From Chara braunii (lineage: Eukaryota > Plantae > Charophyceae), in assembly GCA_003427395.1 (NCBI GenBank), contig BFEA01000034.1:858549-922548 (forward strand): a stretch of DNA of 64,000 nt, in the 5' to 3' direction. The first letter of the stretch is position 1. Every line of letters begins with the position of its first letter. Both the position numbers and the translations under genes were made by a program. Of this stretch, positions 33,115 through 64,000 are shown one piece after another. The notes below the pieces were generated by a model that was not told the origin of the DNA, made no database searches, and worked only from the letters and a program-made list of their open reading frames with translations.

Positions 33115-33176
<62 letters not shown>

Positions 33177-33530
33177 GGGAGATGAAGACACTGAACTGTG
33201 TGCTTCGAACAGTCACTTAACAAGACATGGTCTGCTATTTATGACACACAAATGTACAATGCCTTCTAATGGTCATCTTTATGTATTTGGTCCTTGAGCG
33301 ACTATGTTATGAAAAAAAAAGAGCAACCGTGGTTGTCCTCAATGCAAGGTTGGGTTGTGCATGCCACTATCTCTCTCATGCTCACATGTTGCTAGAATTG
33401 TGTCACGCAGTGGTGAACCGTGTTTGTTGCAGGGAAGGTCACGATTTAACTGAGGCTTCCACACGTGTGGCCACATATAGAATGAAGCAACAGCAATCCT
33501 GCGGACTCAAAAGGAAGGTTGGCTACTGCG

Positions 33531-33624
<94 letters not shown>

Positions 33625-33809
33625 TTCAGTCATTGCTTTTGTTGCATGCGAGGTCCGCCAGAAGACCCAACACATGACATTTGCGAAATTGCACAGCGAA
33701 TCGTCCAACAGTAGAAAAGGACGGGAACAAACCACGAAAACCCACGACATGAGCACTGCGAAACGAATTTTCCCCCCCCATACAAAACGCGGACCATACA
33801 GGAAAGGTG

Positions 33810-34161
33810 AAACGTTTTCAGCACGTTTCAACAAGCTTTCAACACAGTTCAATAAGTTTTCAACAAGTTTCAACATGTTTTCAACACGTTTCAACAAGCT
33901 CTCAACAACTCTTCAACAACTTTTCGAAAAGTTTTCAACAATTGTTCAACAGTTGGACCAACATCATTTCAACAGTTGGACCAACAGATGAACACACCAG
34001 TTTCAGTTTTTCCAATATTTGGTCAGCGTTGGTTTCCTTTGCTTTTGGGAGAACACATGACCCCCCCCCGCCAAACAGTTTATAAACACAGTTCCAACGG
34101 TTGAAATATGGTGTCCACATATGTTCATCAAGGCCAAAAATTTGCCACAATTTTTCTGTTG
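33810..34161 (+). mobile_element. Right-hand terminus of a TIR DNA transposon: subterminal TTTCAACA repeats plus a 21-bp terminal motif
   Basis: TTTGCCACAATTTTTCTGTTG (34141-34161) is the exact reverse complement of 63608-63628. Both are backed by TTYCAACA repeat arrays. Confidence 0.6.
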
Positions 34162-34164
34162 AAA

Positions 34165-35893: not shown

Positions 35894-37192
35894 TAAAAAT
35901 AATAATAATAATAATAATGAAACGGTATTCACCACTTCGCAGTAGCTGATGCAGATCCCAGGGCTCGATCCCTAGTTCCCTACCTTACCTGTGTACAGTA
36001 ACTGTGTCAACCCGTAGATTTCAACCCGCAACCTGTAGGACTGCCAGTGGTAGGTAGGATTTCGTAGGTCACAGGGCAGAAGGGACTCGAACTGTAGACC
36101 TGTCGGGTAGGAGTTTAGACAGTCCAGAGATCGTAGTTGTAGGCTCTCTGAAGGGTCAAGGTCGTAGCTGCTACTTACCTGAAAAGGCAAAGTCGTAGCT
36201 GCTACAATACCGAAAGGCCAAGATAGAAGTTTCTAGAAGTGGCCTTTCGGAATCAGCCTACGCTAGGCAGAGGCAAGTGGTTAAGCGGTGGCAGTCCACC
36301 TCGTACAGTCAGCAACCCCAGGCCACCCAGTCCGGTGCAGTCAAGCAAGTACCATCTGGGACCGTGTGCACCATGGGCCAGAGGTTACAGAGCAGACCAA
36401 CGCATCACAGAAGCATAAATCAAGAGGTTGCGCCCAACCATTTATTCATTCATGCGGAAGCCATGCGAAAGCGCTGCTTCAGCGTCTTGTGCACGGAGGT
36501 TTGTTGAAGGCCCGAAGACAAAGTGGGCGAGAGCGAAGCAGGGTAGCCATAGCGATAGGTAGCGGCAACCATAGCTCCCATAGCTTAGTATAGGGTGCAG
36601 TGTGTGTGTACTATGTGAGTGTTCAGAGTGATGTGCGTGGGACATCCATGGTGATCCAGAGTGTGAACAGTGAGTTGTTTGGGCGCACAGCCGCCATAGC
36701 CAACTGAAAGAGAACTCTCTTATCTGGTTGCGACATCTCTGAGTACTGTGTGGGCGCATGTCGCCAGTTTGTCTACTACTGTTCACGTGTGAATAAGTTG
36801 AGTCTGATTGCAATAATAATAATAATAATAATAAATATGCAAAGAACATGACTGCGGACGAAGCTTAGAATTTCAAATCGCAAAATCACACTGAAGTTCG
36901 AGCATTCAAAGCATGAGCAGATAGCACAATGGAACCGAGCAACCATCCATTTGAGAATGATACCGCAGGATCGTAAGTCAATGTCAAAGCCCGATCGGGC
37001 AACTCCAACAACATAACCCAATGTAACTCTTACTCTTTAATGACGACTGACGCCCTATCTACACTACGGCCTATTTCTACAACTACGACATGCAAACAAC
37101 CGATCAATTTGACGACTGGTGAGCGATGTTGTCAACATTAGTGCCGATTCTCTCTCTCTACCTGCTTGCAGATGCCACGAGGCTATAAAGCA

Positions 37193-37227
<35 letters not shown>

Positions 37228-38558
37228 TAACAGCGAGATGACATTTCCAGTTCACACCATCACATAGAAAGTCAGATAGTCACACTGTGTCCAGGGAGCA
37301 GCATTGCACCAATAGTACCCCAATGGAGGTTCATGGAACTGAAAATCGATGTCAAAAAGAGTCATACTTTCTTCTTATCAACACAAGAGTCCAGCCCCCT
37401 CATTCTTCTACTTGTGCTCGGGGCCTAGCCTACTCCTACACAGCTACTACAGATTCCAAAAGATAATGCAATTGTTTGACATCAGCGGCAACCCGAAGTA
37501 CTTGAAGAGGTCGCTCAGGCAGACCAGCGCCAATTCAAGGTAAGTGCCCCCTACATCATCATCACCCTTATCACCATACCCGGTGTCTGTGTCCTAGTGC
37601 ACGTCATAGTCTGTGTTCATACTGATTGTGCGACTGCCACCTCCGTTTGTGTCACAGCATCTTAGTCTGTGTTACCGTGTGACTGTCGTCTCTATCATAG
37701 TGTATCCGTGTTTGTGTCACTTGTGTGACCGCATTAGTGGTTCTGAATCTNTATTTGTCTGAGTCCTGTATCTATCTGCACGAGTTCGTATTTGTCTTCG
37801 CTAGGTCTGTCATTCTCCGTCTTGCCACATCAGCTTATCTGTGCTTTGCTGTCAAGCCTTAGACCGTAGGTCAGTTCCGTAGTCAGTAGCTGCGTAGGAC
37901 TTCCGAAGGATCGAGNTTGTAGTTGCTACAGTCCTAAGAGATCCAAGTTATAGCTGCTACAATTTTAAAGGGCCAACTCTACTTACTTCCGGAAGAACCG
38001 GATGCGGCCCCTTCAAACCTTGCCTGCAGTAGGTCGGATGCAAGTGGCCAAACGATGAAATTTATCCTCGTTGAGTCAACGGTATCCCATTCCTAGCCTT
38101 ACTCTGTCCAATCAACAAGTGTCACGTGGGGCTGCGTGCATCAGGGACCCGGCGACCAGAAGTATTAATCAGGGCATCGTTCAGCCATTCATTCATAGCT
38201 GTATGAATCATGCCGATGTCGGCCACAACGCCTTGTGCGAGGTGGTCTGTAAAAAGTGTCCGAAGAAGGAGGTGGCTGAAGTGAAGACAATACAGACTTA
38301 CCCGTAGGCGATGGGGTGTTGATAGAGTTGCGTGCGGGGTATCTCGCGCGATCTGAGTCGAGTGCGCACAATCAGTAGAGTTAGGACGCAGTGGCAAATA
38401 GGGAGGCTGCCAGGCGCTGAATCGCCATAACCAATGAAAGTGAATTCGTATCTGGAAGCCATACCTCTGAGTATTGAGTGGGCGTATCGACAGTTTGTTG
38501 TGCTGTTGTTTACAGGCGTGAAAAGTGTGAATGAAAGCGAGTCTGATTGTATAATAAT

Positions 38559-38598
<40 letters not shown>

Positions 38599-39065
38599 TA
38601 ATAATATCAATAATAATAATAACAATAATAATAATATAAATAAGCAAGGGAGATGAGTAATCAGTAATTTTCAGCAATCAAACAGTATCATACACACAGA
38701 CCAGGTAGTCGTGACGATCGAACCAACAGCAGCATTGCATTCAAAGAAGAGCACTGCAAAAGCTCATAATTGAGAATGCTGGAGTAGTCTCATCATCATC
38801 AACGAAGAACCAGAGCTTGATATCCTATCTGGCTCCCCGGCGCCCAGACTACAGATGGCAGATCCTGTCTAGCCTAGACTACAATGTTGATGACGACGTC
38901 AACAGCTTCCCAAGTACTAGCAGATCCCGGCCAATGCGTTTCTGTTGTAGCCCCGTTCAAACACGGGTACTCTAATAATAATGACCATAGTACAATAATA
39001 ATAATAATAGTGATAATAATAAAATAATAATAATACAACAATTATAACAACAATAATGATAGTAA
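35435..39065 (+). mobile_element. Nest of LTR-like units in (AAT)n: ~35435-36811, partial ~36838-37195, 37226-38551, partial ~38640-38970
   Basis: Units start TGCAAGG/TGCAAAG/TATAACAG, and the long ones end GAGTCTGATTG(C/T)A (TGCAA...TTGCA inverted termini). Internal blocks are shared. Confidence 0.55.
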
Positions 39066-39721: not shown

Positions 39722-41380
39722 TCAACTTCCTTCACTGGAACGATACTCTTGCAGCACCTCACGAACAGAAACTTCTTTCACCACTTTGCGACGATACTCG
39801 TGAAAAGTTCCGAATCGACTTTGTCTTTGCCGATTGTAATCAAGGTGAATTGAAGTGTCCACACATCTCCAAGTGTTCATGCTCGTATTTAACGACTCTG
39901 CTGCTTCCACAATATCTCGCACCCTGTGAGAACTGTCAAGATAGGACAAGTGTGCAAGTATCTTTTTGGGACCAATAAATTGAAAAGAGTCGTACAAAGC
40001 GATGTCAAAGTCGGAAGAACTTGGTTGTTCCAAGCGTCCTGACATGCAAATCGTTTGTTGATGGCGTATCAGCGGGCAGAACGGAACTCATGGGGGACGG
40101 AGTAGGTCGAGCGGCCGACTAAGCCGAAACAACAACAGAAGGAGTGACAATCGCGGTTGACATATTGGAGGGCGAAGCATAATCCGCAAGACGTTGAAAA
40201 TTTGGAGGAGACGCTGTTTGAAGGGGAACTCTAGGAATCGGAGCAGAATGAGGAGCGGAAGAAGCAACGATGGGAGGAATCTTTTTTAGAAGCTGCTCTA
40301 CACGTGCATATTTGTGAAAGGCTTGCGGAATGGTCCCTTCTGTCGGACAATGCAGCAAAGGAAACGTCATCCTAGCAATCTCCTCATTAAACAGATCGAT
40401 GAACTCATCATTCAAAAGCGATTGCAATATGGAAGAAGCCTCCAAATTCGAAACATTCAACAGGTCTGAAGGAAGAGGAGATCGTCGCTCCAACCGCATA
40501 TTAGTGACTTTGTTTCTTTTCCATTCCACGAAATTTTCCCATATTCGTCCATCTTTTACAACTGTGGCATTTTTGACAAACATCTCAAAAAGAACCTCAG
40601 TCAAGACATTTTGGATGCCAACCTTCTTCGCATCGTCAAACCATCTAGCAAGGTAAGCGCGAGAATTCGGAGTGCAAATTGCGGGTGCATCGTTATTATC
40701 AGGCACCACAACAACGCTGGGACGATTTTGTGTCCGCAAAGTGCCGCAAACATGTCTTTCACGTCCACTATGTTGAGATTGCGAAGACGAATCATTAACA
40801 CGTCCACGTCCAGCAAGCGGTGCACAAAACGCAAGAGATGCAAGTGCTCTTGCAATTTGAGTTGTCGTTTCATTAACAACAGGTTGTCGTGCCACCCGAT
40901 TATCAGCCAACGTAGCTTCGAGCATATCGGGCAAACTCATAACATTAATTTTGGCACCACATCTCTTTCTTCTCTTGAATGTAGAATGAACGCAGTCTTC
41001 TTTTGAATCACTCGTAACATCATCATCATCGTCAGCAGCAAATGTAAGCTTCACAGGCTTACCCGACCGAGCTCCACACGAACCATCCCCATCACCACAA
41101 CAATGATCACTATCCCCGTCCACAACCATTTTTTCAGCACCATCAAGGGTATTCACTCGCAAACATCCACGATCAACATCACTAACAGCACGATGATCAT
41201 CCTGAGCACATTCACTTCCAAGATTCACCGACCTTTCATCATTTTCACTTTTCTTGGATATCTTAGAACGCTGGGCTCCAACTTTTGATCCAACATTCGT
41301 ATCTTGTCCAGTGATATTGCTGGTTGCTATTGCTTTCCTCTTAGCACGAGTGTCATACTTATGCGAAATTCGGGAGTCGC
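39722..41380 (-). CDS. Helitron-internal second ORF(s) of unknown function (40119-41228, open upstream to ~41380; 39722-40045 in another frame)
   Basis: 369-aa ORF with a globular-looking core (YLARWFDDAKKVGIQNVLTEVLFEMF...), lying inside the Helitron boundaries. No family recognised. Confidence 0.5.
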
Positions 41381-41448
41381 CTGCAAAGAAATAATATGAC
41401 AGAAATTATTTTGGAACGTGACGAATCGACAGAAAAAAAAAACATGAC

Positions 41449-44400
41449 TCACCCTAAAAGTTCATGATATACAATATTATTCGTAAAAAAATTCTTATCA
41501 GGCAATGCAACACGGGTGTTGTTGGGATGCCCAACACGAGACAAAGCGACATACAGTTGGCCATGCGCAAAAACCGGTTTGCTTAGCCAAACCCCTGCAC
41601 GCCATACAGTTTGTCCTTGCGACTTGTTAATCGTGACAGCAAAAGCGAGACGGACAGGAAATTGCCTTCTAAACCATTTGAACCCCGTGGTCTCACCATC
41701 ACTTGTCAAATCAATCTTGGGGATCAATATTGTCTTACCCGTGTGCATTATGGTAACTTCCAACAAATCATCATTAACGATCTTTTTCAGAATCAGCCTT
41801 GTACCGTTGCAAAGTCCTTGCTTCGATGACAAATTTCGCAAAAGCATCACAGGTGGACCAATTTTCAAGCGCAACTTGTGAGGCAGAAGGCCAAATTCGT
41901 CGAGAGAGTTTAAGAACTTCTGCTTAACAATGAGTCCCGTATCATCCGAATCAGAAAAATCAATACTAAAAAGGTCACGCACCTCCCTGGGAAAGTCGTC
42001 AAAAACACGGTTGTTAACAGAACCGGCATCATCATTAGGGCATAAAATTAATCGAGGCAAGAAATAATCGGCATCCCCCACATGGTTGGACACATCATCA
42101 AACGTTCATGAAATCAACTCATCAATCAATTTATCCGTACAAATCTCACGTGGCAATCTTCCGCAGTAGGTTCATTAGGAACAACACGAGGATGGTCACA
42201 ATTCCCAATTCGCATAAAAAAGTGGGCATACATTTGTGTCATTTCATCATTCCCCAGGCTTAAGATTCGCATATTTTCAGTCATTGATGAACATCAAAAA
42301 GTTTTCACAAAGGGGACATTTTCATGGATGCATCAATTTGTTGCGCTCGCGATCCATGTTTCACAACAAGCAAAACCTGTCTAAAATCTCCAGCAAGAAG
42401 TAGAACTTTCCCACCAAACGGCTCGTTATTGTCACAAAGGTCCCGAAGCGTAATGTCAAGAGCTTCCAAGTGGAACTTGTTACTCATCGGAGCCTCGTCC
42501 CAAACAATCAAGTCCGCACGGCGGATAAGCTCTGCAAGATCACTTTGTTTCGGAATCAAAAAGAGACCCGTGTTATCAGGTTTCAAAGGTGCGCGAAACC
42601 GTAAGTGAAAAGTTCGACCCTCCGTCAAAAGAGTCGCCTCTATCCCACTGGACGCGACGGCCAATGCAATGCTAGAACGGGACCTAACGCCTGCCAAAAT
42701 TGTTTCAATGCAAAAAGTATTTCCTGTTCCAGCAGGTGCAACCACAAAAGCACGCAACGGTCTTTTCTCTTGCGCAACCCGAACGACTCTTTCTACCAAA
42801 ACTCGTTGACGTGGACGAAGACGTCGAAAATTAGAGTCATATCTGCGTTGCTTTTCAATCGGATTATACGACAACTCGTCATTTAGAATCGACCACACCG
42901 TTCTTCTCTTGTAATGTCTGGTTATGTTCTCAGCAATTGTTTCCCCATCCAGCATCGGATAATGAAGGCAAAAGTGACAGATGCTTTTTCCAGACTCTTG
43001 CAAAATCCGATCAAGATGGAATAACACCGACGATTGCAAAATGTTCGGTTGAACGATTTCACAGCCGTGGCGATACTGAAAATCGTCAGACATCTTATCC
43101 CAATGTCGTTCGAAGAAACGAACCGGATCGTTCACTGGACCAAACGCGAGAAGCATAGCGAATATTTTACGAACTTCTTCAGGCATGTAATGTGCAGCGG
43201 CTGTGTCTATGCATTGATCGTATGCATCATCCGTTTGCAAAAGGCTCAATCGAAGACACACGGATCGGAAAGAATCGTATTCCACTCCGTCCACTGTACG
43301 AATTTCAGCAAAAGAGCGTACCCCACGAGAATGTTCATGGTTCAACAACATGCGCAGATAAAATCGTTCGCCTTCCACGATCCTCACATGATGCAACCGA
43401 TATATATTTTCGAAGGGACCACCGTGAAGATCACGCTTTTTTCGGTTCCACTTCTTATTTTTGTTATCCCACACATGAGTATTAATGATCTTTGCGTATA
43501 GAGGAAGTTCGTCTTTAGGAACATGCTCATTCAAAAAGTTGTGTTTCATCCATGCCGTCAATTTCGTTTTCGGAGGCCCTTGCGAAACAACGTCATCCTC
43601 TGTGTCAGGTTCGAATTGCACTTTTTGCATGTTTTCAAGATGCACGGGCAATCTTTCGACCGCAGGTCATTGTTCCGCAACGTCGAACGTAAACAGACGC
43701 CAGCATGCTTCGCATGCACCTACAACACACATATCTTGGTACAATTTGACCTCGTCGATCGGTGCATTATTATCTTGCTCACAAACCACAACACAATCAC
43801 ACCCTTTGTACATGTACTTATACACGTACTTGCAGGCCTTCACATTAGCACAATATTGAACATTTATGTGGCAATTAAACCTCATTAGCAAGTACGGGTT
43901 ATAAGGAACTACACACCGATTGTCGTAAACGATTCCATTTTGAACAATCGTAAAACCACCGTCACTTGGTTTCCTTCTCCTATACAAAGGGTACGTTTGT
44001 TCTTCTTTGAATGTTGTTGTTGAAATGAAGTCTTTCAGAAACCCTTTTGTGCATTCTCCATCCTCCATACGCGAAGCGTCGCGTTTCTCCGCTCCGCAAA
44101 TCCCGTGCAACATGAACTTCGCCACCCTTTCTCTCAATTCCCCTTCCGGAAGAATCTCCGCACACACCACATTGTCAACAGCATCAGCATCCCGAATTTT
44201 ATCATTCAGATGCAGGACAACCAATATATGTGCGTGTGGTAAACCTTTTTTTTGAAACTCCATCACATATAACATTGCACTCACGCTACGAAAGATCCGT
44301 TTATTCTTTATCTCATCAACCAATTGTACAAGATAACCTTTGAACACTCGCGCTAGAAGATCCGGCCTGTAATTAGAACATTGACCTGGCAACAGAGCTT

Positions 44401-46275
44401 GTTTAATCTCCGGCCAGTTAGTGTTGCACGTCATAGTGATAAAAAGATCCGGTTTTCCGAATCGCCTCACAATCGCCATGCTGTCGTGATATCTTTCACT
44501 AATATATCGGGGTTCCCCAGTGAATGTTGACGGCAAAACCACTTTTATCCCAACACTATCACCACGTCGATTTTGTTGCACGGCGTCTCTTAAATCCTGA
44601 TAATACTCCGAGCGCAATTCTTTCTGGTGGAATCTCGCCCATTTTAAGCGGAGGGATTCAACTTTACCGTATGCCATGCAACAAAAGTCGTGGAAGAGAC
44701 GTGCTGCATAAAGGAGGCAAGGTCTTTCACCATCGCGCTCGTGAAGGTGAAAAGCATAGTACTCCTTTGCACTAAGTCCTGACGACCATCCAGCTTTCGA
44801 GGCACGTCAAACAGACCAACTATCAATTCCCTCCGGGAAAAGTAAAATAAACCTTAAGCAGTCGTGCGCTCGAGAACATTCCGGAACCACAACCGTCTGC
44901 CGCTCATCCGGAATAGGAGCACGCAACCGAATCTCGAGCTCACGAGGAAGAAGTTCATCAGCCATCAGAACACACACCTCATGCAAACCCATAGGACGGT
45001 TATAACGCCTTGGATGTTCCCCATCCGGCACGGTATCCGGATTTATGACCAACTTCTTCCCGTTCAATGCTTCAGGCGGAAGGTTAGCAACTGTCATAAA
45101 GTCCTTCACGTAATTGTTACATCGTTGTAGCAATTCGTGAAACCTTCTTAAGATGCGTTTCGTTCGATCAAGTTCGGCATCCGATGTACCTGCAGGTAAG
45201 TTAAGGAAGTCTACCCTTTGATCAATCGCATCGTCTAAACGTTGAGGATTGTGAAAGTACAACTGTGCAAACTGAGACGTTCCCCTTCCCCTACAGCCAA
45301 TGCACTGACCCGATGAAAGATTGGACCTTGAGCCCGAAGTTGGCCTTGGAATCCTTGAACACCATCGCTCGGTTGCTTCAGTCGCGACGATGCGAGGGCC
45401 AAACTATTATTAATTACCCTCGCATTGTTTCGAAGGAATCGACCGTCCGAAGATTGAGACGTCCAAAGGGAAAGAATCTCATGCTCTAGGGAGCCTTCGC
45501 AAGGTCATTCCCATAAAGGACAATGTTTCGCACCTTTTCTGCAACAGATCTTTGTCCATTTTTTTTCATGACGCCACAATTTAGCACCACAATAGGTACA
45601 CGAATCTTGACTGCCAGGGTCGAACATCTGAACAGTGTTAGCATTCCCAAGAATTGCTACCGTGCTCTCAACCGCAGCATATATTGTCGCCACAGGTGCT
45701 GATGGGAGTGCATTAAGATGAGGACCCTGAATATCACACGAATTGTTCATTTCTTCTTCGTGACTATCCGGCTCATTATCTTCGCAATTGTTCACTGAAT
45801 TTCGATTTCTTATGGACGGATTCTGTGATTGCCTCGCTCGAGATGATAGACTTCGCGACTGCCTTGCCCGGGAAGAACAACTCCGCGATTCTCTCGTAGG
45901 AGAAGATGCTCTCCTCGAATGCGCAGAGGTGTTCGCTCGAATTTCTCGAATGATATTCACAGCAAGCAAACTTCGCCGCACACCCCGTACAAAAGTTGTA
46001 TGAGCACGCACATCTTCTTTCCTCCTATGATTCTTAAGCGCAACTCTCAATGCACGCATACGTTTAACATGAAAGTTCGGTTGTCTACCCTGACTTTTCC
46101 TTCGTTTTGAAATTAAACGCGACGTAGAACACGGTTCATTCACGTTCAATCCATCGACTTGTTGTATTCCTTCACCAACCTCTACCGTACTTTCACCAAC
46201 TATTGCACTTGCATCATAGCCTGACGACACATGATGACGCATCAACGACAATGATCCAAGTTCCAAACGACGCAC
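41449..46275 (-). pseudogene. Helitron RepHel protein (HUH Rep plus Pif1-family SF1 helicase), broken by stops and frameshifts
   Basis: N-terminal CTYCGAKLW...CCRKG. Rep motifs FITMTCN..WPEI, EFQKKGLPHAHILV and YVYKYMYKG. Helicase motifs APAGTGNTF (Walker A K to N), IVWDEAPM, GDFRQVL, QFPVRLAFAVTINKSQGQT and FAHGQLYVALSRV. Confidence 0.95.
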
Positions 46276-47009
46276 GACCTTATTCGCACGGAGCCGTCAA
46301 ATCAATAACATACGCTACCGTCGGTTGCGCCTCGAACGAATCGCTTTCCGCAATAATAATCTTCTTCGTCGATTATGAAATCCAAGAAACTTTCTAATGA
46401 ACGTGTTCGGCGAATTCGGCGGGGTCGTAGCAACAGAAGGTGCATTTGCATGAACATCCCTCAAAGGAGGACAAACATTACTCTCCACAAATGCTTGCGG
46501 GACAGCGACAGTAAATGTGGACGATGAACAATTATGAACATGTGCAGAGTGCGAGGGAAAAGTATCCAATAAAATTGATCTTTCAGCAATCGAAACGGAA
46601 TCTGCATTTATTGCAACATTCGTACGAATTCCAAGTGGACATTCACTTTGCAAGGTCATAGAGAGATTTACAGGACAACCAATGCGATTCGTACTAATAT
46701 TATTATCACGTTGACTCATTCTGTTGAAAAACACGGGGCTCGTGAAATCATTCATGGACGGGATTGATTGTCGAAAAGATAGAGACCTATTGCTACGTTG
46801 TTCTTCATCAGAACAGTCAATACTATAATTTTGACTTACCACCGGTTGTTTATCTCCCTTGCGAGCAGTCGTCTCACCTACGGCACCTACGACACCTACG
46901 ACCTGTAATAAAGACCTTCGGGTTCGACGACTTTGGGAAGGTGATCGTCCACGTTTGCGATGTTCGTGTTGTGATGGCATCGCCGTGTCACTCGTAGAGC
47001 GACAGGGAG

Positions 47010-47263
47010 TATAGGTAGCGGCAACCATAGCTGCCATAGCTTAGTATATGGTGCAGTGTGTGTGTACTGTGTGAGTGTTCAGAGTGATGTGCGTGGGACA
47101 TCCAGGGTGATCCAGAGTGTGAACAGTGAGTTGTTTGGGCGCACAGCCACCATAGCCAATTGAAAGAGAACTCTTATCTGGTTGCGACATCTCTGAGTAC
47201 TGTGTGGGCGCATGTCGCCAGTTTGTCTACTGCTGTTCACGTGTGAATAAGTCGAGTCTGATT

Positions 47264-47480: not shown

Positions 47481-48597
47481 CATATCAAAGTCAGTTTTGG
47501 ACACGGTGCATGTCGGGCATACGCCAAACTTCACAGTCGCAAGCGCACATCGTTCTGGGTAGTCCTGTATATAGTTGAGGAGGAAAGGGTGGACAGTTAT
47601 GTCCCTGAATCTCGTTGTCGGTATCATTATTCCGTCATGAGATGCCTCCTTCGCAGACTGCAACACCACTGTAAGGGCCTTGTGCAAAATGACGGCCTTT
47701 CACTTTCTGAATGCGGTGGACTATTGACCCCATCCTTTGTCACGTGGACGATGATGAAGCATAGGAAGATAGGCCAGCAGTATGGCTTCGGATGCGTGGT
47801 CGGATAGGGACATCATCAGAGGGTACGCCGTTTGTTTTTGACGACCGTCCGTGTATGTCTTGTCAGAATAGAGCGACAGAGGGATAACATAACGTGGATT
47901 TTCATTCCCGTCCATACCTCTGTCTGCTCGAATGATCGACTGGATGTGATAACTTAGTGCCCCGCTGCGCGGGCTAAACATACTGAGGTCCTCTGACCGC
48001 GGGGACACCTCTAGAGAAGACACCGTCTCGAAATTTCTGTAATGCGATATTAAAAATCGACAGAAATGTGGCTCGCCAATCGCGGTGTCACAAGATGGCA
48101 TGCGCATCTCGTGGCCAGTCGTCGCCACGCAGATCTGACTCCTTCCATCCCGCAGCCTCTGCTAGACTGCCTGCCCATGTCAAACACTCTCGACTATTAC
48201 GGTATGCAATATCTGTCGTGCTGAATCTCGGGTCTTTGAGAAGTGACAAGAGAGCATCTATGTCACTCTGCGACATACCGACGCCAACCCTGGCATAGAA
48301 AATCAATGCCGCAAGCTTGCGAGAGCTGTCAAAAGACTCGGCAGGCGGTGGTTGCTGCTCTGCGAATGACCTGCCCTCCCCGTCTGCGTTCTCGGGGGCT
48401 CCAATGTCCTCGCTCTCATCGCTCACGAGATTCACTGCACCTATGTTTGATGACCCGCAGGCGTCAGCAACGTCCATCTCCTGCCCTTGTGCTCTTTCGT
48501 CCACCACAGCCGGGCATGCCCTCGCACGATGTGAATTCAAAGTTCGTAAGGACATGAAAGGCCTGCCACAGTCGCATACCCGTGGACCGCTGTCCAT
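47480..48597 (-). pseudogene. Plavaka-type (CACTA/EnSpm-related) transposase, N-terminal half, truncated
   Basis: C2H2-like CDCGRPFMSLRTLNSHRARAC, VIPLSLYSDKT...AYPLMMSL...AILLAYLP, LHKALTVVLQSAKEASHDG and HPFLLNYIQDYPERCALATVKFGVCPTC. Two in-frame stops near 47700-47723 and a frame break near 48100. Confidence 0.8.
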
Positions 48598-49168
48598 TTT
48601 CTGTGCATGCAGTCCATTCCAAAGACAAACAGAACGGTGCGGACAGTGCTTTGATTAGCATTTTTTACATTGGTTGAGGTCGTTCGAATTATAAGTTGCA
48701 CAACATATTTTGTTATATTCTGTAAGTGTTGCCCTTCCTCTTCTGTGTGTGAGAGAGAGAACGATGGAGTCTTGAATGTCGTTTTGGGAACTGACTGTCT
48801 TTGTCACTGGTCTCGATTGACAAAGATTAGCAGTCAGACGTGTGACACGATAATGTATATGCCACGACAGGTTCCATGATCCTGTTGGAAAAGGCAACGA
48901 CTTGCACAAGTTACACGATATGTGACATGACATTCATCACCAAGTTTGTGCGGCTGGTTAAGTTTGCAACTATCCATCCATAACGTTTGTGAATGTGGTA
49001 TGTGTTTTCTGCGTCTGCATCAAAATTATTGCACACCGGCACCTTAGCCGACCTCCGCATCCATTGCCAAAACATTTCACAACCTGCAAAATTTGAATTG
49101 ACATCACAAAGAAAGCAAAAAAAAATAAATAATAAAAAACACAACATACACACATTGGTCATCATAGG

Positions 49169-50218
49169 CAGGGTTGTCGAGCCCCGGCCTCGGGGCCCCG
49201 GCGGGGGTCCGGGGGTCCGGGGGTGGGCACCCCCAACCCCGGCTCNNNNNNNNNNNNNNNNNNNNNNNNNNNNNNNNNNNNNNNNNNNNNNNNNNNNNNN
49301 NNNNNNNNNNNNNNNNNNNNNNNNNNNNNNNNNNNNNNNNNNNNNNNNNNNNNNNNNNNNNNNNNNNNNNNNNNNNNNNNNNNNNNNNNNNNNNNNNNNN
49401 NNNNNNNNNNNNNNNNNNNNNNNNNNNNNNNNNNNNNNNNNNNNNNNNNNNNNNNNNNNNNNNNNNNNNNNNNNNNNNNNNNNNNNNNNNNNNNNNNNNN
49501 NNNNNNNNNNNNNNNNNNNNNNNNNNNNNNNNNNNNNNNNNNNNNNNNNNNNNNNNNNNNNNNNNNNNNNNNNNNNNNNNNNNNNNNNNNNNNNNNNNNN
49601 NNNNNNNNNNNNNNNNNNNNNNNNNNNNNNNNNNNNNNNNNNNNNNNNNNNNNNNNNNNNNNNNNNNNNNNNNNNNNNNNNNNNNNNNNNNNNNNNNNNN
49701 NNNNNNNNNNNNNNNNNNNNNNNNNNNNNNNNNNNNNNNNNNNNNNNNNNNNNNNNNNNNNNNNNNNNNNNNNNNNNNNNNNNNNNNNNNNNNNNNNNNN
49801 NNNNNNNNNNNNNNNNNNNNNNNNNNNNNNNNNNNNNNNNNNNNNNNNNNNNNNNNNNNNNNNNNNNNNNNNNNNNNNNNNNNNNNNNNNNNNNNNNNNN
49901 NNNNNNNNNNNNNNNNNNNNNNNNNNNNNNNNNNNNNNNNNNNNNNNNNNNNNNNNNNNNNNNNNNNNNNNNNNNNNNNNNNNNNNNNNNNNNNNNNNNN
50001 NNNNNNNNNNNNNNNNNNNNNNNNNNNNNNNNNNNNNNNNNNNNNNNNNNNNNNNNNNNNNNNNNNNNNNNNNNNNNNNNNNNNNNNNNNNNNNNNNNNN
50101 NNNNNNNNNNNNNNNNNNNNNNNNNNNNNNNNNNNNNNNNNNNNNNNNNNNNNNNNNNNNNNNNNNNNGAAACCCGTACCCCGGCTTGGGCCCCGGGGAT
50201 CCCCGCGTGACAACCCTG
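49169..50218. mobile_element. hAT-superfamily element (interior unsequenced) with TIRs and an 8-bp TSD
   Basis: TIR CAGGGTTGTC...GACAACCCTG. Perfect TSD ATCATAGG at 49161-49168 and 50219-50226. GC-rich CCCCGG subterminal repeats. Confidence 0.92.
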
Positions 50219-50425
50219 ATCATAGGGGGTGTGATGTATCTCACGTGCTACAGAAGGCAACAAATTGTGACATATATTGTAACAATCGTCAAATGATTGA
50301 AATAAAGTTGCACCCAATGTCTTGACGCTGTTATGAACCGCATGTACTTGGAGAGGCAAACAACAGGCAGCATGACACAAAACCTGTAGACGGATGTACA
50401 TGTTCTACTATAGCTACAACCAGAC

Positions 50426-50495
<70 letters not shown>

Positions 50496-50627
50496 TTCAC
50501 TAGTGCGGGCCAGAACGACAACAAACAACACCGGTGGATACTTATATGGCACACAGTAGTGAACCCGACCGTGGTTGAGGGATGTACAAGTTGAGGGTTG
50601 TTTGTACAACTACTCCATTGCTATATG

Positions 50628-52169
50628 CTATGCATGTCTATCATCAGGTTGACTGCGAACTATGGCGTCTCCTGTTGAGAGATGTCGTGGCTGAGCACCA
50701 ACTATGGCGTCTCCTGTTGACAAGCCGGGGTTCAATGTCTCTCCGCAAGCTGTCGCCATTACGCCGTGTATGAGGCAACTGAGGTTGATTCCCCACGCCA
50801 GTAACGTTGCTAGCACAGCCTCTCTGTTCACCAGAACAAACCATCCATTGCCAATACGTGACCACTTTTTCCCCTTGTTGCATGCTTGCATTATAGTGGT
50901 GACTGCGGCATAATGTAGAGCACCGTCAGGTGTTGCCCCTTTCATCACAACACGCAACACATTGTGCGGATCGGGGAAAGCACGTGCCAACCTCAGAACT
51001 GCATGTGTCCAACCTTTTGACATCTGTCCACTCGCCCCCTTCAAATCATAGTAAACATCATCTTCCTCATCTGCCTCGTCGCTGCTGACATCGCTGGCGC
51101 CCACCTCCACGTCAGAAGACGATGCCTCCTCATCCTCTTCTTCATCTTCTTCTATATCTTCATTGTCTGTGTATATTGCAAAACAACTTGCCAAATCGGC
51201 GTCTTCGAATCCAACATCACACTGATCTCTTTCCATAATGTTAGCATTGAAGATATCCGCAAGCAGTACCTCCTCTGTGTCTGCTATCTGCATGGGAGGC
51301 ACATCGACTGCCATACTGCTTATTGATTTTCCTGCTGCTGATGTTTCACCGTTGTCTGAAATGATTGCTAAACTTGTTTCCCTAGCGATCAACTTTCACC
51401 CTTCTTCTCGTTCTCTTTGTCTCTCAACATCGCAACTTGCATGACTGAGCCGGTCCAAAACGCGTGACAATAAGTCCCCCCACAACGAACTGCTGGATAT
51501 GAAGTCGTCTTCTCCTCTCGCTGGCACAAATTCGATCAGATCTTTACGCTGCAGTGCAAACTCTGTCACTTCGTGCAACGCCTCGTGGATGACGTTCCTG
51601 TCCTCATCACTCTTTTTCATGAAATCGCAGAGCTGATCCAGCAGAACATATTCCACACCATCTGCAACAATTACAGGAACATCTTGGAAGTCCTGTGGTG
51701 CTGTTTGTGTGATGTTCTTTATTCTGGACAACACCAAGATCTCTGCAGCACCAGTTTTCAACTCGTCCTTGGACCCATCAACAAGCATGTCGGAGTTCTT
51801 CGCCACAGTGCCCAGCAACTTTTTGAAATCTGCAGGTGCATACGTTCCCCCTTTTTTGTGCATTGTCATGTCCACGTCTCCATCTTCGCACGTCCCTTCG
51901 TTGCACATCCACTGAACCACTCCTTTTAGACTATAAGGACTGTGTTCCACTTCGTTGTCCACACGTATACATGGTGACTCTCTGAAGCGTTGCAAGAGCA
52001 TTCGTGCCTTGACACAGCCCTCGTCATTTGCCATGATTGTGGATCTCATATCCACACTGACTGCGAAGTAACTCGGCACCCTCTCCTTCAGCAAAGAGAA
52101 CTCGATGTCACCGTTGTAGTGGATGCCCTCCGCTGCATACTTCATTACCTCAGCAAGAGCCTTCTCCAC
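50628..52169 (-). pseudogene. ~510-codon reading frame of unknown function with an internal TGA
   Basis: ORFs 51396-52169 and 50628-51392 share a frame and are separated by one stop. Composition is protein-like with a central acidic tract. The frame continues a short way upstream past a TAG. Confidence 0.55.
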
Positions 52170-52311: not shown

Positions 52312-52333
52312 ATTGGCGTGTGTGTGTGTGCCC

Positions 52334-52766
52334 AAGTTGGCTACTGCGTGTCATTCCAAGTCGCAACGGTGGTGATTCCTCAGATTCTGGCACGCAGTAG
52401 CCAACTTCATTGCTGCATGCCAGAATGTGTGTTTGTGTGTGTGTGTGTATGTGTCTGTGTGTGTATTAGTATACATGTGCATGTGTGTGTTCCTGTATCA
52501 GTGTATATGTGTATGGACCTGTGTGTGTGTGTATGTGTGTGTATGTGTGTGTGTGTGTGTGTGTGTATGTGTGTGTATTAGTGTACATGTGCATTGATGT
52601 GTGTGTGTGTGTGTATGGTCTGACCTATGTGTCTCCTTCACTATGCCCAAGTTGGCTACTGCGTGCCATTATCTGTCGCAACGGTCGTGATTCCTCAGAT
52701 TCTGGCACGCAGTAGCCAACTTCATTGCTACATGTCAGAATGTGTGTTTGCGTGTGTGTGTGCGTA

Positions 52767-52819
<53 letters not shown>

Positions 52820-52955
52820 NNNNNNNNNNNNNNNNNNNNNNNNNNNNNNNNNNNNNNNNNNNNNNNNNNNNNNNNNNNNNNNNNNNNNNNNNNNNNNNNN
52901 NNNNNNNNNNNNNNNNNNNNNNNNNNNNNNNNNNNNNNNNNNNNNNNNNNNNNNA

Positions 52956-53009
<54 letters not shown>

Positions 53010-53401
53010 CGTGCGTGCGTGTGTGTGCGTGTGTGTGTGCGTGCGTGTGTGTGTGTGTGTGTGTGTGGCAGACAGACAGACAGACATACACACAGACAGA
53101 CGTACAGAGAGACACGCACACACATACATATGGACAGACAGATAGACAGCATGGTTGACAGACAGACACACACACACACCGCACACAGACAGACAGACAA
53201 ACAAACAGACTGACAGACAGACAGACAGACAGACTAACAGACATACACACCCCGAGCCAGACAGACAGACAAACATAAAGACAGACAGACATACATACAG
53301 ACAAACAGACAGACGAAGTTGGCTACTGGGTGCCATTCCCCTCGGAGAGAGATGTCATTCGCAAGTTTTTGGCACGCAGTAGCCGAATTCAAGGTTGCAT
53401 G

Positions 53402-53445
<44 letters not shown>

Positions 53446-53962
53446 TGTGTGAGAGAGAGAAACATCCAGGCAGACAGACAGAGAGATACACAGACAGACA
53501 TACATACACATAGACGGACAGACTGGCAGATAGGGAAACAGACAGACAGACAGACAGACGGACAGACAGACAGACAGACTGACATACACACACATGCACA
53601 GACAGACAGACAAACATACAGACAGACACACAGACAGAAAGACAGGCAGACAGACAAACAGATAGAGCGACAGACTGAGAGACAGACCGACATACAGACA
53701 CACATGTGCACAGACAGACAGACAAACATACAAATAGACAGACAAACAGACAGACACACAGACACACAGACACACAGACAGACAGACAGACACACACATG
53801 CACAGACAGACAGACAAACATGTTGACAGACAGACAGACTGACTGACAGACAGGCAGACAGATAGGCAGACAGACAAACAGACAGACGAAGTTGGCTAGT
53901 GGGTGCCATTCCCCGTCCCAACGGTCATCATTCGTCGGTTTCTGGCACGCAGTAGCCAACTT
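52334..53962. repeat. Four ~74-nt hairpins (20-bp stem AAGTTGGCTACTGCGTGCCA) embedded in (TG)n/(ACAG)n microsatellites
   Basis: Copies at 52334-52407, 52649-52722, ~53316-53389 and 53889-53962. A half-site occurs at ~33518-33536. Confidence 0.9.
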
Positions 53963-53979
53963 AAATGTTGCATGTCAGA

Positions 53980-54032
<53 letters not shown>

Positions 54033-54586
54033 CGTGCGTGCGTGTGTTGCAGACAGACGTACAGACAGACAAACATACATAACATACGGAGCAGACGGAC
54101 CACATAACTTCTTTGTGTTGTCCATGTATATCTATGACCTATGTGTATTTATTCCTGCGATAGAGGTTGGACAATTCAACGTAGTCCCACGTTCAGCCGT
54201 TCGACATTATTATAGGTGTTCGTTGGTTGAATAAGAGGGGAGGAAGCAAAATTTGGAATCACTTTTTTATCTGTCTCTCCCTTAATTTTTATAGATTTCT
54301 CAATTGGATGAAACCAAGCATGTTTATGCATTGAAACCAAGAAAGGAAGAAGACGAAAAAAAAACAACTCATCCTCTCTCTCTCTCTCTCTCATGTTTAT
54401 ACATTCAAACCATACTTGAAGGAAGGAAGAACACAAAATTAAAAACGATAGAGAGTTAAAGAAAGAAAGTAAGAAAGAAAGAAAGGAGAACAAGAAAAAA
54501 ATAAAAAAGAAGAGGCTCACTAGTTGGAGGCAAAATCAGCGACAGTGTCGTCGATCTATACATATATGTCCCCCACTAGTAAACCT

Positions 54587-54664
<78 letters not shown>

Positions 54665-54744
54665 TAAGCCACCGAACACCAGGAAGACTAACCATGACAC
54701 GCAGTCGACGGGAGAACCATTACTCGACACACACAACACAATTC

Positions 54745-55347
54745 TCAAACAACCTTTTTTTTCGCGCCCCCCCCCTTACGAGGCACTGCTCTCCTCTTCT
54801 TCGCGCCTGCTCTGCTGCCATCCGTCTCCTCCTGTCTGGCCTCCATCCGTCGCTGCCTCTCCTCTGCTCTTGCCCTCTCGCCCAACATTCCTTCATATTT
54901 CTCCACCCGGCGAGGCTTCGACAACCTATCCACCAGCCTCATGTCCTTGACCTGGATCGTCACCCTCTTCGAGTGGATCGCGACCTCGTTGGTGTTCTCG
55001 AAATTGGAAACCAGGTACGCCTCGGCAGCCTCCATCAAAGCACTCACCGCCGTCATCTGAAACCTCATGCCTTCACCAGGAGCAATGGTCTCCTCCACAA
55101 CCTCGCGCACGATCCGCAAGAATGGCCTGAAAGCCAAGCAGAGGTCAGTGGATCGTTGCAACTTCCTGATTTCCGCCAGAGTTGCCATCTCGGGGCGTCG
55201 ACGGCGTCTGTGGGGCTGACTGCGTGCATCTGCAGTGTCATCGGTGGCTGGCACGGGCTTCGGGCTCTTCTTCTTTTTGCCTGCAGCCGTCTTCCCACTT
55301 GGCGGTTTCGACGCGCACTTCTTCATCTTCCTCGGGCTCTGGGACAT
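54745..55347 (-). CDS. Divergent histone H3-like protein (200 aa) with extended loop 1 and a C-terminal extension
   Basis: RRPEMATLAEIRKLQRSTDLCLAFRPFLRIVRE...MRFQMTAVSALMEAAEAYLVSNFENTNEVAIHSKRVTIQVKDMRL aligns to H3 alphaN through alpha3. The ORF is uninterrupted and intronless. Confidence 0.88.
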   Translation of the reverse strand: MSQSPRKMKKCASKPPSGKTAAGKKKKSPKPVPATDDTADARSQPHRRRRRPEMATLAEIRKLQRSTDLCLAFRPFLRIVREVVEETIAPGEGMRFQMTAVSALMEAAEAYLVSNFENTNEVAIHSKRVTIQVKDMRLVDRLSKPRRVEKYEGMLGERARAEERQRRMEARQEETDGSRAGAKKRRAVPRKGGGAKKKVV

Positions 55348-55669
55348 CGCAGTGTGACTTGGGCCGGTCGTGTCCCCCTGTGCTACAGAGCACCCTGCGC
55401 TGCCACGAGGACCACCTCAGCAGACAAACGGGAAATTCCGTAGCGCTTCTCTGTCCTCTTGCCCTTCCACGTCAATCCACCTGCCAAGTCGTTCTCCACG
55501 ACATACCGAATGTCTCGCAGGAGTCCATCTGAGTAGGTCAGATGGAAAGGCACACCAAACGGGTCTGTGAATGTCATGGTGACGTCTCCACCATGCTCGT
55601 ATGTCATGGGACATACGACTAGGACCCAGCCAAGAAGTGTCGTGCAACGGTGCCTGCGGCGAATGTGAG

Positions 55670-58600
55670 TCATGTATATGTTCTCACCGTCGCCGTGCTC
55701 TTGCCCAGCGCAACTCTCCTCAACCATGGACCAGATCCCCTGCTCTGCCATGGAGTCCTAACCCGCACACACCATCTGACGGTCCTCCTCCCTGATCTTC
55801 TCCCAACAGCACGATGGGGGCTCGAAAAGGTGGCAGGCGCAGGCGTTGTGTCGTCGGCGGCAGTGACGGGCATCGTGCCCTCGGCGTCCACCGCCGTGCA
55901 TGGAGATGGACAAGTCTCACCAACCGCACCCGACGCCGACGGCCGTGCACTGAGGGAAGGAAGATCGTGCATGTGCCTGGCGGGCGACGCCTGCCCTGCT
56001 CCAACGGCTCCAGGCGTGCCTGCCTCTCCCGCACGGGCAGACCCACAAGCGGCCCTCGCTGCTCGATTCCCTCCCGCGCTCGCATCGTCTGCATCAGTGC
56101 CGCCCAATATGTCGTCTGCATCGTCCACAGGCAGGCTGTGGGATTCTGCCTCTGGTGCGAGCGTGGCGGCAAGGACGCCTGAACAATCATCCGCCGCTCG
56201 TGGCGGGAGCACCCGACCCGCAGGGCTCACAGTCACAGGGGCCGCCCGCTCTAAGAACCCGTCTCCTCGATAAGGCTCCGTCAACCAGGAGACATCATCA
56301 TCAATGACGTCCTCCCCCTGAACCGCCTCACCGCCCTGGTGACGAATCTGGTGGGCCAATGCTGTTGCAGCCCTCGCCAAGCGTCTGCCCCTCGGCTGTC
56401 TCCTGAGGCGGTCGGCCTCCCTCTCGATCTCCGTCGGGTCGTACATCCCAGGATCCATCTCGTCCGGCTCGTAGCGAGCGAAGTCCTCAGCCCTCCTCTC
56501 GACATCGGTCAATCCAACCCCCGAGAAACCAGCCCCGATAAACCCCTCGCGCGCGTGACTGCTCTTGAGAAGCTTGATGTTCCAATGACATAACACAAGC
56601 TTCTCCAACTGCTCAACGCCCAACCTGTTGCGCCTTTTCGTGTGAACGAAGTCGTGCGTCGACCAATTCCTCTCACACGGAGAGGCTGTGGTCCTCGCAC
56701 CCAAGCAGCGCATGGCAATGTCCCACAACACCCGATGACTGGCCCCCTGCACCCTCCACCACTGCACAGGATCGAAGTCGGGCTCCTCCACGCTCGCATC
56801 CCCAATGTCCCCCCCTCATTGAGCAGGTGTGGGATACTTGTCGTGGAAGTCCTATAGAGAACTCCACACGACTGTCATCAGCGGGCCCTGTCGACCACCC
56901 TCAATCTGGCTCCCCATGTACGAAGAGAATGCGCTCCTCTGTCGTCCCACGCATCAAAAGATCGATGCTGCGGTACTTGGGGTGCAACAAGTACGCAGCA
57001 CAATGAATGGGGGTCAAAAGCATATCCGACCTCTCCTTGACTATCTTCTTGATGGGCATGTGACAAGCCTCATCAAGCGACAGTCCGTCGACTGTGGTCC
57101 GCAGGCGCTCCAACAATCCCCACACATCGCCGACTCTCCGCCCGTCAGAATCAACCTGCTGCAGGAGCTCGTAAATTGGCTCCATAATGGTGCAGACAAG
57201 CTCCACCTGCTGCCACCACCGCAGATCGCGAAGAAGGTCGAAGCACCTGCGTGCTTTGTCCCTCAACGCAGGGAGCCACGGGGACGTCGCCCAGGCGACA
57301 CCGCTCACACATGCATCCAAAGGCCGATGCAACGTCACCATGCGTTGCAGCATGATGTAGTTGGTCCCATACCGCGTCTCTCCCGGCCAGATCAATGATA
57401 CAGTGGGGAATTGTCGGCTCAAAAGGTACGCTGCCCGTGCATGGCGTCGAAAAAACAGTGTGATGTCTCATCCCTCTGCAATCACCTGCGCGACCCACGG
57501 CTGTCTGGCGATGTGCGTCAGCATCAGATTGCAGCAGTGAGCTGCACAAGGAATCCATGTGATGCGGCGCAGTCGCTCATCGGGGTCGCCACGGAGCAAA
57601 TGGTAAGCCTCCTTGTTGGCTAACGCGTTGTCCGTGCATATGGCGCCCACATGCTCTGCACCGATCTCGAGGATGAGCTCCCTCCATCTGCGGCACAAAC
57701 CTGCCCCGGTCCTCCCTTGCCAAACATATCCTCCACCCGGTAGAGCGACGCCCCCAACCTCCCTGCGACCAAGTAGTTGCAGAGAGGGCGGTTGGCCTGA
57801 GTCGACCAACCGTCAGTCATGAAAGTGACCCCCCCAGACCACGACTCACGGTGATACCTCAAGCGCTCGTTGAGCTCTGCGTACAACATGGACAACAGAG
57901 TCGTCCTCAGGAACTCGTACTGTGGCTGACGCGGCCTGTAGGGACCCCTAAACTGACTGAGATAGGCGTCATGAAGCGCCACATACAACTCCAATCTGGC
58001 GATGTTGAATGGCACACCACAACCCACAAAGAATCGGATGTAGGCCATATCCAGGTCGTACTGAATGGGGTGTTGAACCCATTCATCCAGGCGAGTCTGA
58101 GTCAGGTGCGGCACTTGGTGACGATCCTGTCTACCCTCCACAGGGGCAATTGCAAGCCCCTCCTCGAGGTCCGAAGGGACCTGAATGCCCTCATCTCTCG
58201 CCCGTTGTAGCATCCTTGACCTCCACCACTGCTGCTCGTCCTGTGGAGCGTGCTATGATCCGTCCGCCTCACGGCATGCCCTCGTCGGCCCGGCAGCACC
58301 GCTGGGATCACACACCCTCTTCCCCATTGGATCAAACTGTCTCGTCAGGGTGCCCTCTGCACCATCTCCCCTGCCCTCGTTGTGCACTCTCGACGAGCCC
58401 TCATCATGAGGGCCCACTCCTTCAGACGGGCCCGCTCCTCTGGAGGAGCCTGCTCCATGTCGTCGTCCCTCTGCTGCCTGACCTGCTCGGTCCGGCCGTT
58501 GTGGCCCCCATCCTCCACGAGCCAAGTCGTGCACGGGGACCAGGGGGGGCTCTCGTGCCGCGACGCCAGGCAATCTCCAGTAAAGGGGATGCTCAAAATT

Positions 58601-58707
58601 GAGCTCGCCATCCCTGTCCGCCACCCTCACGTAGACAGGGAGGGACCCCTTGAGTGCGACGGCCGCAACCAGATTTTTGGAAGTGCTCGTCAAAGCTTGA
58701 AACTTTG
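55670..58707 (-). pseudogene. hAT transposase (DUF659 core plus C-terminal dimerisation domain), frameshifted
   Basis: RFFVGCGVPFNIA, GVTFMTDGWST (D1), AICTDNA (D2), WIPCAAHCCNLML, PGETRYGTNYIML and DPVQWW...ASPCERNWS (E)...HTKRRNRL, spread over four ORFs. Confidence 0.93.
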
Positions 58708-58785
<78 letters not shown>

Positions 58786-59605: not shown

Positions 59606-60916
59606 ACCGAAATCCCGAAGTGCGTTTCCGGTACTGAAATCCCGAAGTGTGTTTTCGGTACCGAAATCCCGAACGCACGTCGGGATATAATCACCCCCCC
59701 GAAGAAAACGACTAAGTAAAATCTCGAAATCCCGAAGTGCGTTTTCGGTACCGAAATCCTGAACGCACGTCGGGATATAATCACCCCCCCTTAAAAAAAC
59801 GACTAAGTAAAATCCCGAAATCCCGAAGTGCATTTTCAGTACTGAAATCCCGAACACACGTCGGGATATAATCACCCCCCCACAAAAAAAAAACCAACTA
59901 AGTAAAATCCCGAAATCCCGAAGTGCGTTTTCGGTACCGAAATCCCGAACGCACGTCGGGATATAATCACCTCCCCCTTAAAAAAACGACTAAGTAAGAT
60001 CCCGGAATCCCGAAGTGCGTTTTCGGTATCGAAATCCCAAACGCACGTCGGGATACAATCAAACCCCCCCAAAAAAAACGACCGAGTAAAATCCCGAAAT
60101 CCCGAAGTGCGTTTTCAGTACCAAAATGCCGAACGCACGTCAGGATATAATCACCCCCCCCTTAAAAAAACGACTAAGTAAAATCCCAAAATCTCGAAGT
60201 CCGTTTTCGGTACCGAAATCCCGAACGCACGTCGGGATATAATCACCCCCCCGAAGAAAACGACTAAGTAAAATCTCGAAATCCCGAAATGCGTTTTCGA
60301 TACCGAAATGCTAAACGCACGTCGGGATATAATCACCCCCCCTTAAAAAAATGACTAAGTAAAATCTTGAAATCCCGAATTGCATTTTCAGTACTGAAAT
60401 CCCGAACACACGTCGGGATATAATCACCCCCCCACAAAAAAAAAACGACCAAGTAAAATCCCGAAATCCCGAAGTGCATTTTCGGTACTGAAATCTCGAA
60501 CGCACGTCGGGATATAATCACCCCCCCCTTAAAAAAACGACTAAGTAAAATCCCAGAATCCTGAAGTGTGTTTTCGGTACCGAAATCCCAAACGCACGTC
60601 GGGATAAATTCAAACCCCCCCCAAAAAAACGACCGAGTAAAATCCCGAAGTGCGTTTTCAGTACCAAAATGTCGAACGCACGTCAGGATATAATCACCCC
60701 CCCCTTAAAAAAACGACCAAGTAAAATCCCGAAATCTCGAAGTGCGTTTTCGGTACCGAAATCCCGAACGCACGTCGGGATATAATCACCCCCCCAAAAA
60801 AAACGACTAAGTAAAATCCCGAAATCCCAAAGTGCGTTTTCGGTACCGAAATCCCGAACGCACGTCGGGATATAATCACCCCCCCCAAAAAAACGACCAA
60901 GTAAAATCCGAAAATC
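59606..60916 (-). repeat. Satellite array III, ~91-bp monomer, same family as arrays I/II
   Basis: Tandem AAATCCCGAAATCCCGAAGTGCGTTTTCGGTACCGAAATCCCGAACGCACGTCGGGATATAATCACCCCCCCTTAAAAAAACGACTAAGTAA, flanked by gaps on both sides. Confidence 0.95.
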
Positions 60917-62992: not shown

Positions 62993-63607
62993 TTTAATAA
63001 TAAAACAATAACAATATTGGTAATAGTGATAACACGTGTGGTCATAGCGATACCATGTCTTCTATTTTGTCGCTACATGGCCTTAGCCTATTCCGATCTA
63101 CTACTATATTCGTGTCTCCTCTGCCCATATACAGTTGAAGATCGAAGATCAAGACGATGATTCTCATGGAGAGTGTCTCCCAATCAGGTACGTATCTCCT
63201 CACTCTCTTTCTCTTACCTCTTCCTTCCTTTTACACTTTTCACTTCTTCCTTTCTCTTCATAATCCTGCCTCTTCCTTACTTCCTCCGTCATTCGGTTCG
63301 CACTATTCCAGGTCACTTCCATTCTTGTCACACATATCTGCCCATAAGTCCGACCAGGTTCAAAGGACTTGAATCCTAACAATATGGAGTATGAGCGAGA
63401 GTGATAAGCAATAATTCAGACAATCACTTCCCGTTGTAACCCTGACAGCCGCATTCTAAGCACAAGGTGACAACTCTTGCAATGGTTTTTACGCTAGTCA
63501 AGCGACTAATGCAGAATCCGGGCTCTGATCCCTAGATCTTACCCACCCGCGTATATAGCGCCCAAGTGTGTTTGCCCGCAATTCGAACCGGTGACTCGCA
63601 CCTTTAA

Positions 63608-63830
63608 CAACAGAAAAATTGTGGCAAAATTTCATCAAGTTTTAAACTTGGGCCCAACACTGGATCAGCATTGGAACTCCATGAAATGATGTGTCCAACC
63701 GTTTAGGAGGGTCGGGTCCATGTTTTCAACCGTTTACCAACATGCGGCCAACATGTTTTCAACATGCATTCAACATTGGTCCAACATGTTTCCAACACAT
63801 TTCCAACAATTGTGTGTTGAAAAAATTGTG
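63608..63830 (+). mobile_element. Left-hand terminus of the same TIR family as 33810-34161
   Basis: CAACAGAAAAATTGTGGCAAA followed by TTYCAACA(TG) subterminal repeats. Confidence 0.6.
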
Positions 63831-64000
63831 CTCTTAAGTTCCCAGCAATGCAGTTCACTACTGAGTGGCAACGGCGGCGCAAATGACGTCATTTCACCTT
63901 TCTTTGACCCGCAGTAGTGAACCAGTATGACGTCGTGACTGCGCGGGTTGCGGCGGCGCACGGCGTTCTTGTAGGGCCACCAAGCGTCCTCATGGTCGGG

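Follow-up and report, generated by a model that had tools for sequence, protein, structure and literature searches.

A histone H3 fold carried by a Plavaka transposon family of Chara braunii, abutted in one copy by a hAT fragment

The H3-like reading frame and the gene that it ends

The 64-kb stretch of Chara braunii DNA analysed here (the window, whose numbering we use unless another locus is named) contains an H3-like open reading frame (ORF) and, upstream of it on the same strand, a fragment of a hAT transposase (Table 1). Much of the initial annotation of this block was borne out. The ORF of 200 aa is intronless, and 322 nt separate its ATG from the stop of the last hAT ORF, close to the 320 bp first given. 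The block is GC-rich and uninterrupted, with 60% GC, no N and no tandem repeat over 54660-58708. The transposase was also correctly described as frameshifted beside an open H3 frame: it consists of four broken ORFs in which Pfam detects both DUF659, split over two of them, and the hAT dimerisation domain.

Table 1. Features of the window, by position, with strand (., none assigned).
Feature	Position	Strand	Remarks
Right arm and right terminal inverted repeat, same Plavaka family	31194-34161	+	opposite orientation to the H3 block
Plavaka transposase, 5' half, broken	47484-48597	-	ends abruptly at 47484
Third, acidic coding block of the Plavaka element	50628-51392	-	order as in the H3 loci
Second gene of the Plavaka element	51396-52169	-	same position in L002, L003, L006-L009
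H3-like ORF, 200 codons	54745-55347	-	open, intronless; 3' end of the ~800-codon first gene of the Plavaka element
Layout of the H3-like ORF			residues 1-54 basic, tail-like; about 55-142 H3 fold; 147-182 charged helix
Bridge, upstream coding remnant of the H3 gene	55348-55808	-	stop and 13-nt deletion; open in L008
Junction of H3 family and hAT	55808-55809	.	0-2 shared letters; related contigs end loosely at 55808, 55809
Last hAT ORF	55670-56791	-	Dimer_Tnp_hAT, E=4e-7; runs out of frame past the join to 55670
DUF659/hAT transposase pseudogene	55809-58654	-	internal fragment, cut at both ends
Left terminal inverted repeat and start of a same-family Plavaka copy	63608-64000	+	runs out of the window

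The ORF carries a predicted H3 fold, alphaN plus three helices. Residues 24-142 match Pfam Histone (E=7e-25), and the best relatives of solved structure are H3 and CENH3 chains (about 1e-24). A structure model, of modest quality (pLDDT 65, pTM 0.29), shows alphaN, alpha1, alpha2 and alpha3 helices with an extra C-terminal helix and matches H3 chains. The closest proteins were three hypothetical proteins of Chara braunii, on scaffolds of GCA_003427395.1, and identity to six full-length paralogues is 68-81% at the amino acid level. Using the coding-like stretch between the transposase and H3 as the query, we retrieved 24 proteins, from Chara in 10/10 checked; in a domain scan of 20 relatives of this bridge, Histone was found in 13, Plavaka transposase in 3, Ulp1 protease in 1 and hAT in none.

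The fold is about 45-49% identical to solved H3 chains. Aligned with H3.1, it keeps the equivalents of R69, R72, R83, F84, T107, H113, R116 and D123, whereas those of R63, K64, Q68, K79, L109, C/A110, R128 and R131 are changed. The canonical tail ARTKQTARKS is absent from the family, and the alignments show no free conserved N-terminal tail with K4, K9, K27 or K36 motifs, the fold being internal to a long frame. Unlike canonical H3, the family protein has about 600 residues before the fold and 57 after it. The replaced Q68, a loop 1 longer by 3 and a divergent tail recall CENH3/CENP-A, but F84 and T107 are kept, so that two of four CENH3 traits (Q68, F84 and T107 replaced; longer loop 1) are present. 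Moreover, CENH3 is a single-copy host gene, whereas the Chara fold is multicopy and lies within a transposon. In a tree with H3 and CENH3, the Chara copies form one clade (100/99) whose sister placement is weakly supported, the outgroup being five non-Chara rows without a labelled Chara H3 or CENH3. By its residues, the fold is not a canonical H3, and it falls short of a full CENH3. In P0031, a protein of 1400 aa, the H3 fold is much more diverged and the match to the upstream region is weak; its gene model also includes a reverse transcriptase and may represent a distant subfamily with an inserted retroelement.

In relatives, the H3 fold closes a single frame of about 800 codons. In L003, for instance, the methionine that opens the H3-like part is codon 598, and the position of the hAT join falls after codon 440. 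Alignment to these copies identifies the ORF of 200 aa as the 3' quarter of such a frame, a remnant and not a stand-alone variant, because the window copy has lost 440 codons and its bridge carries both a stop (55758-55760) and a frameshifting deletion of 13 nt (55415/55416) private to this copy. The ORF that had been called intact is thus open for 200 codons, but it is only the end of a longer, interrupted frame. In L008 the open stretch of 468 codons begins before the join position, includes the bridge in frame and runs through H3, and in L007 about 2.4 kb, containing three stops, keep to one frame with no shift; no fully open copy of ~800 codons was seen among the loci read. As the last 200 codons are open in 3/7 copies (the window, L002 and L008), their openness in the window is not special. 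The methionine that opens them is conserved across copies and may serve as a separate translation start. One tyrosine codon upstream of H3 has become a stop twice, TAG in the window (55758-55760) and TAA in L007 (11222-11224), apparently independently.

The N-terminal region of the long frame has no Pfam match and no Atlas match, and its model has a pLDDT of 32. Within the part lost from the window, L003 8450-9770 apparently contains two repeats of a motif (Y.Y..NWV.G and then beta-strand-like segments); this motif likewise has no Pfam or Atlas match.

A Plavaka element encloses the H3 gene

The initial annotation had proposed a transposon-borne histone belonging to a hAT family. The first part of this proposal holds and the second does not. 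We compared seven other H3 loci (L001-L003, L006-L009) and five hAT loci (L004, L005, L010-L012), each with 10 kb flanks, some of them gapped. hAT sequence was found within 10 kb of H3 at 0/7 H3 loci, and H3 at 0/5 hAT loci, in a census of 12 other loci picked via annotated proteins, which rare hAT-H3 chimeras could escape. Instead, a Plavaka transposase and a common set of downstream genes accompany H3 at 6/7 H3 loci, and the window has their counterpart, in the same order, at 47484-52169. The seventh, L001, has no Plavaka in its fetched, gapped DNA and has Ulp1 and downstream homology.

At the amino acid level, the broken transposase at 47484-48597 and the Plavaka domain of P0020 are 75-79% identical, and the homologous ORFs of L002 and L003 have Pfam Plavaka matches; a single 102-aa piece from the window, scanned alone, had no Pfam match. 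For the second gene of the element, dN/dS against L003 was 0.38. Between copies, identity in the H3 block correlates with identity in the Plavaka block (Spearman 0.92, over 15 non-independent pairs), as expected under joint inheritance.

Two complete elements could be delimited, one in L003 (1232-25724; 24.5 kb, gaps included; duplication TA/TA) and one in L007 (6324-25753; 19.4 kb, gaps included; duplication CA/CA). Both have 24-bp terminal inverted repeats (TIRs) that start with CAACAG (CAGCAG at the left end of L007) and enclose the H3 gene. Each 2-bp match is weak alone; the two elements agree. Plavaka transposons have CA..TG ends and 2-3-bp target duplications (PMC12730594), which these ends and duplications fit, and they were recently shown in streptophyte algae (PMC13519894). 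The H3 fold therefore lies inside Plavaka TIRs, travels with the Plavaka transposase and ends a long frame.

The Chara family shares with known Plavaka elements of the CMC/CMCT clade (PlavakaB, PMC12730594; algal elements, PMC13519894) the transposase domain, 5'-CA..TG-3' ends and a 2-bp duplication, and likewise accessory genes, with an Ulp1 protease domain in relatives. It differs in its ends, CAACA..TGTTG as against CATCA..TGATG or TGT..ACA, and in its cargo, an H3 fold in place of a TET/JBP dioxygenase.

In the window, we did not find both Plavaka ends in proper orientation around the H3 block. The family's ends there, a right one at 34161 and a left one at 63608, are both oppositely oriented to it, and the right arm may or may not belong to the same copy. 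Two inverted copies of 2.07 kb, 95.8% identical, flank this arm (29136-31195 and 37019-39065). A flip between them would align the arm with the H3 block, so that it may come from the same copy, inverted or misassembled. The letters AA follow the right TIR (34162-34163) and precede the left one (63606-63607); this match is probably chance, and would be a matching 2-bp duplication if the ends came from one rearranged copy.

Other repeats lie nearby. A broken Helitron on the minus strand (40119-47037; Helitron_like_N, PIF1, Pif1_2B) adjoins the Plavaka sequence cut at 47484. Within the Plavaka element, 52329-54045 holds four units of ~160 nt among microsatellites, seen also in L002 and L003. Related satellite arrays, of 81-, 82- and 92-bp units, occupy 4285-5967, 7973-13060 and 59636-60913; the 92-bp array matched none of the Plavaka and hAT loci fetched.

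Selection on the fold and its possible role

That the H3-like gene is multicopy and under selection was upheld by the seven other loci and by the substitution pattern. Between subfamilies, dN/dS of the fold was 0.17-0.42 (Fisher p 4e-8 to 0.024); the tail-like part was less constrained than the fold (0.47-0.89, not significant). In two pairs of close copies, values for the fold were 0.75 and 2.15. These ratios indicate purifying selection on the H3 fold between subfamilies, in active lineages, and suggest a gene that is selected while its transposon lineage is active and that decays after insertion.

Several transposons carry anti-silencing or chromatin cargo, among them VANDAL/MuDR elements with VANC, fungal elements with TET/JBP and Harbinger/MuDR elements with SET (PMC12730594), and Chromo and PHD fusions occur in Chara transposons (10.1101/2021.11.30.470311). 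The Chara element resembles these in that it moves by cut and paste and retains, under selection, a gene related to chromatin. It differs in that its cargo is a core-histone fold and no reader, writer or eraser of chromatin. In the literature searched, we found no transposon with core-histone cargo and no report on the Chara Plavaka-H3 family.

Taking VANDAL and TET-bearing elements as analogues (PMC12730594), we favour a model in which active elements make an accessory protein of ~800 aa whose H3 fold pairs with host H4 as a histone mimic. Such a mimic would occupy or loosen the chromatin on the element and, having no lysine motifs that bear silencing marks, might let the element escape silencing or build a transposition complex. 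It is quite conceivable, if still tentative, that the family's fold is an H4-binding mimic of this kind, loosening or occupying element chromatin without sites for silencing marks. That the H3-like domain is a working one, which binds host H4 and enters chromatin at or close to the element as a variant without silencing-mark sites, seems possible, if rather doubtful.

The fold might alternatively steer insertion to particular chromatin, such as centromeric sites or sites bound by H3-H4 chaperones, with no part in anti-silencing. Its two CENH3-like traits (the replaced Q68 and the loop 1 longer by 3) would suit this role, and Chara has many transposons that carry chromatin readers (10.1101/2021.11.30.470311). 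However, the equivalents of F84 and T107 are canonical, and the tree, with weak support and few outgroups, does not group the family with known CENH3; we consider such targeting unlikely. A structural role for the fold in the transposition complex is a further rival to the mimic.

Under the mimic model, if the fold pairs with H4, the family would offer a direct test of whether a genomic parasite rewrites its own nucleosomes. The family matters more than the neighbouring hAT sequence: it is a cut-and-paste transposon that retains a core-histone fold, beside a SUMO-type protease in relatives. It also carries a warning: in Chara braunii, many gene models labelled 'histone H3' are relics of transposons.

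The join to the hAT fragment

Homology to the H3 loci ends at 55808-55810, except that it stops at 55793 in L009, where a few letters are deleted; for the closest hAT copy the limit is 55806-55809. The 30 nt on the hAT side, in register, match hAT copies at 24-28/30 positions, and the 30 nt on the H3 side match H3-family copies at 26-28/30 (17 in L002, which has a 4-nt deletion). Public DNA contigs related to the H3 family part from the window at 55808, where they enter the long gene; a putative RNA contig of the hAT family does so at 55809, where it enters a normal hAT tail. As these alignments place it, the block is a chimera of two transposons with a sharp join at 55808/55809. hAT, bridge and H3 lie in three different frames, so no fusion protein is encoded; an in-frame transposase-histone fusion is ruled out by these frames together with the stop between. 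Nor is there a hAT TIR between transposase and H3, the join sitting inside both coding regions.

The hAT sequence is 77-86% identical in DNA to five copies of DUF659-type Chara hAT transposons. Those copies carry no histone, and the window has an internal piece of them without ends. At the join position, four of the five relatives read on through a C-terminal tail of their own, and the fifth passes into DNA that is unrelated; past it, L010 and L012 have a further 1.55 kb in common, to one 3' end that is absent from the window. At about 58654 the piece is cut again where four relatives run on into upstream coding sequence, and its 5' side runs into a gap at 58786. As no 5' TIR or target-site duplication (TSD) was found in the fetched DNA of the relatives, our claim is limited to the common 3' end. 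hAT TIRs with an 8-bp TSD enclosing both genes, which the idea of a histone-bearing hAT called for, were not found at the window, where the fragment is cut at both ends.

The window very probably holds a dead copy of a Plavaka transposon (CMC clade; ~20 kb when complete) that has lost its left part and is abutted by an internal hAT fragment. The two could have come together through an insertion, nested or adjacent, and a later deletion sealed by end joining. Functionally, the H3 gene and the hAT fragment are unlinked. The initial annotation had suggested that the pair might be no chance neighbourhood; the hAT piece is instead an unrelated fragment, joined apparently by a one-off rearrangement, and the pairing is an ordinary scar of nested, deleted transposons.

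Could the join be an assembly error linking two repeat families? The assembly is rich in gaps and repeats, and among the matches listed no contig spans the join, the nearest contig of 100% identity stopping at 55826; no spanning read was seen. However, the join lies within an N-free contig, and the 0-2 letters shared there would probably be too few for an overlap-based misjoin. We regard such an error as very unlikely, and it would leave unchanged which element owns the H3 gene.

It is more improbable again that the rearrangement turned the 200-aa stretch into a free protein with expression in the host today. Despite the upstream stop and frameshift, the stretch is open, and its methionine is conserved, but the same 200 codons are open in two further copies as well, and over the whole 4 kb only 13 RNA reads were found in 901 million letters, one of them at 99%+ identity. 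This sample was about 6% of one raw run from one tissue, in which few reads do not prove silence; among the matches listed, no putative RNA contig covers H3.

A hAT family with its own H3 variant downstream of the transposase is scarcely credible: the two parts are on the same strand, 322 nt apart and similar in GC (58% and 61%), but the loci compared never pair them (0/5 and 0/7), the hAT relatives run on at the join into their own tail or, once, unrelated DNA, and the join cuts both genes within coding sequence.

Between the hAT fragment and a CT microsatellite, about 50 nt (58655-58707) match none of the fetched loci. One of the hAT copies, L004, departs from the others near its position 15109, about 8 nt past the window's join position; this may reflect coincidence, search bias or a fragile site.
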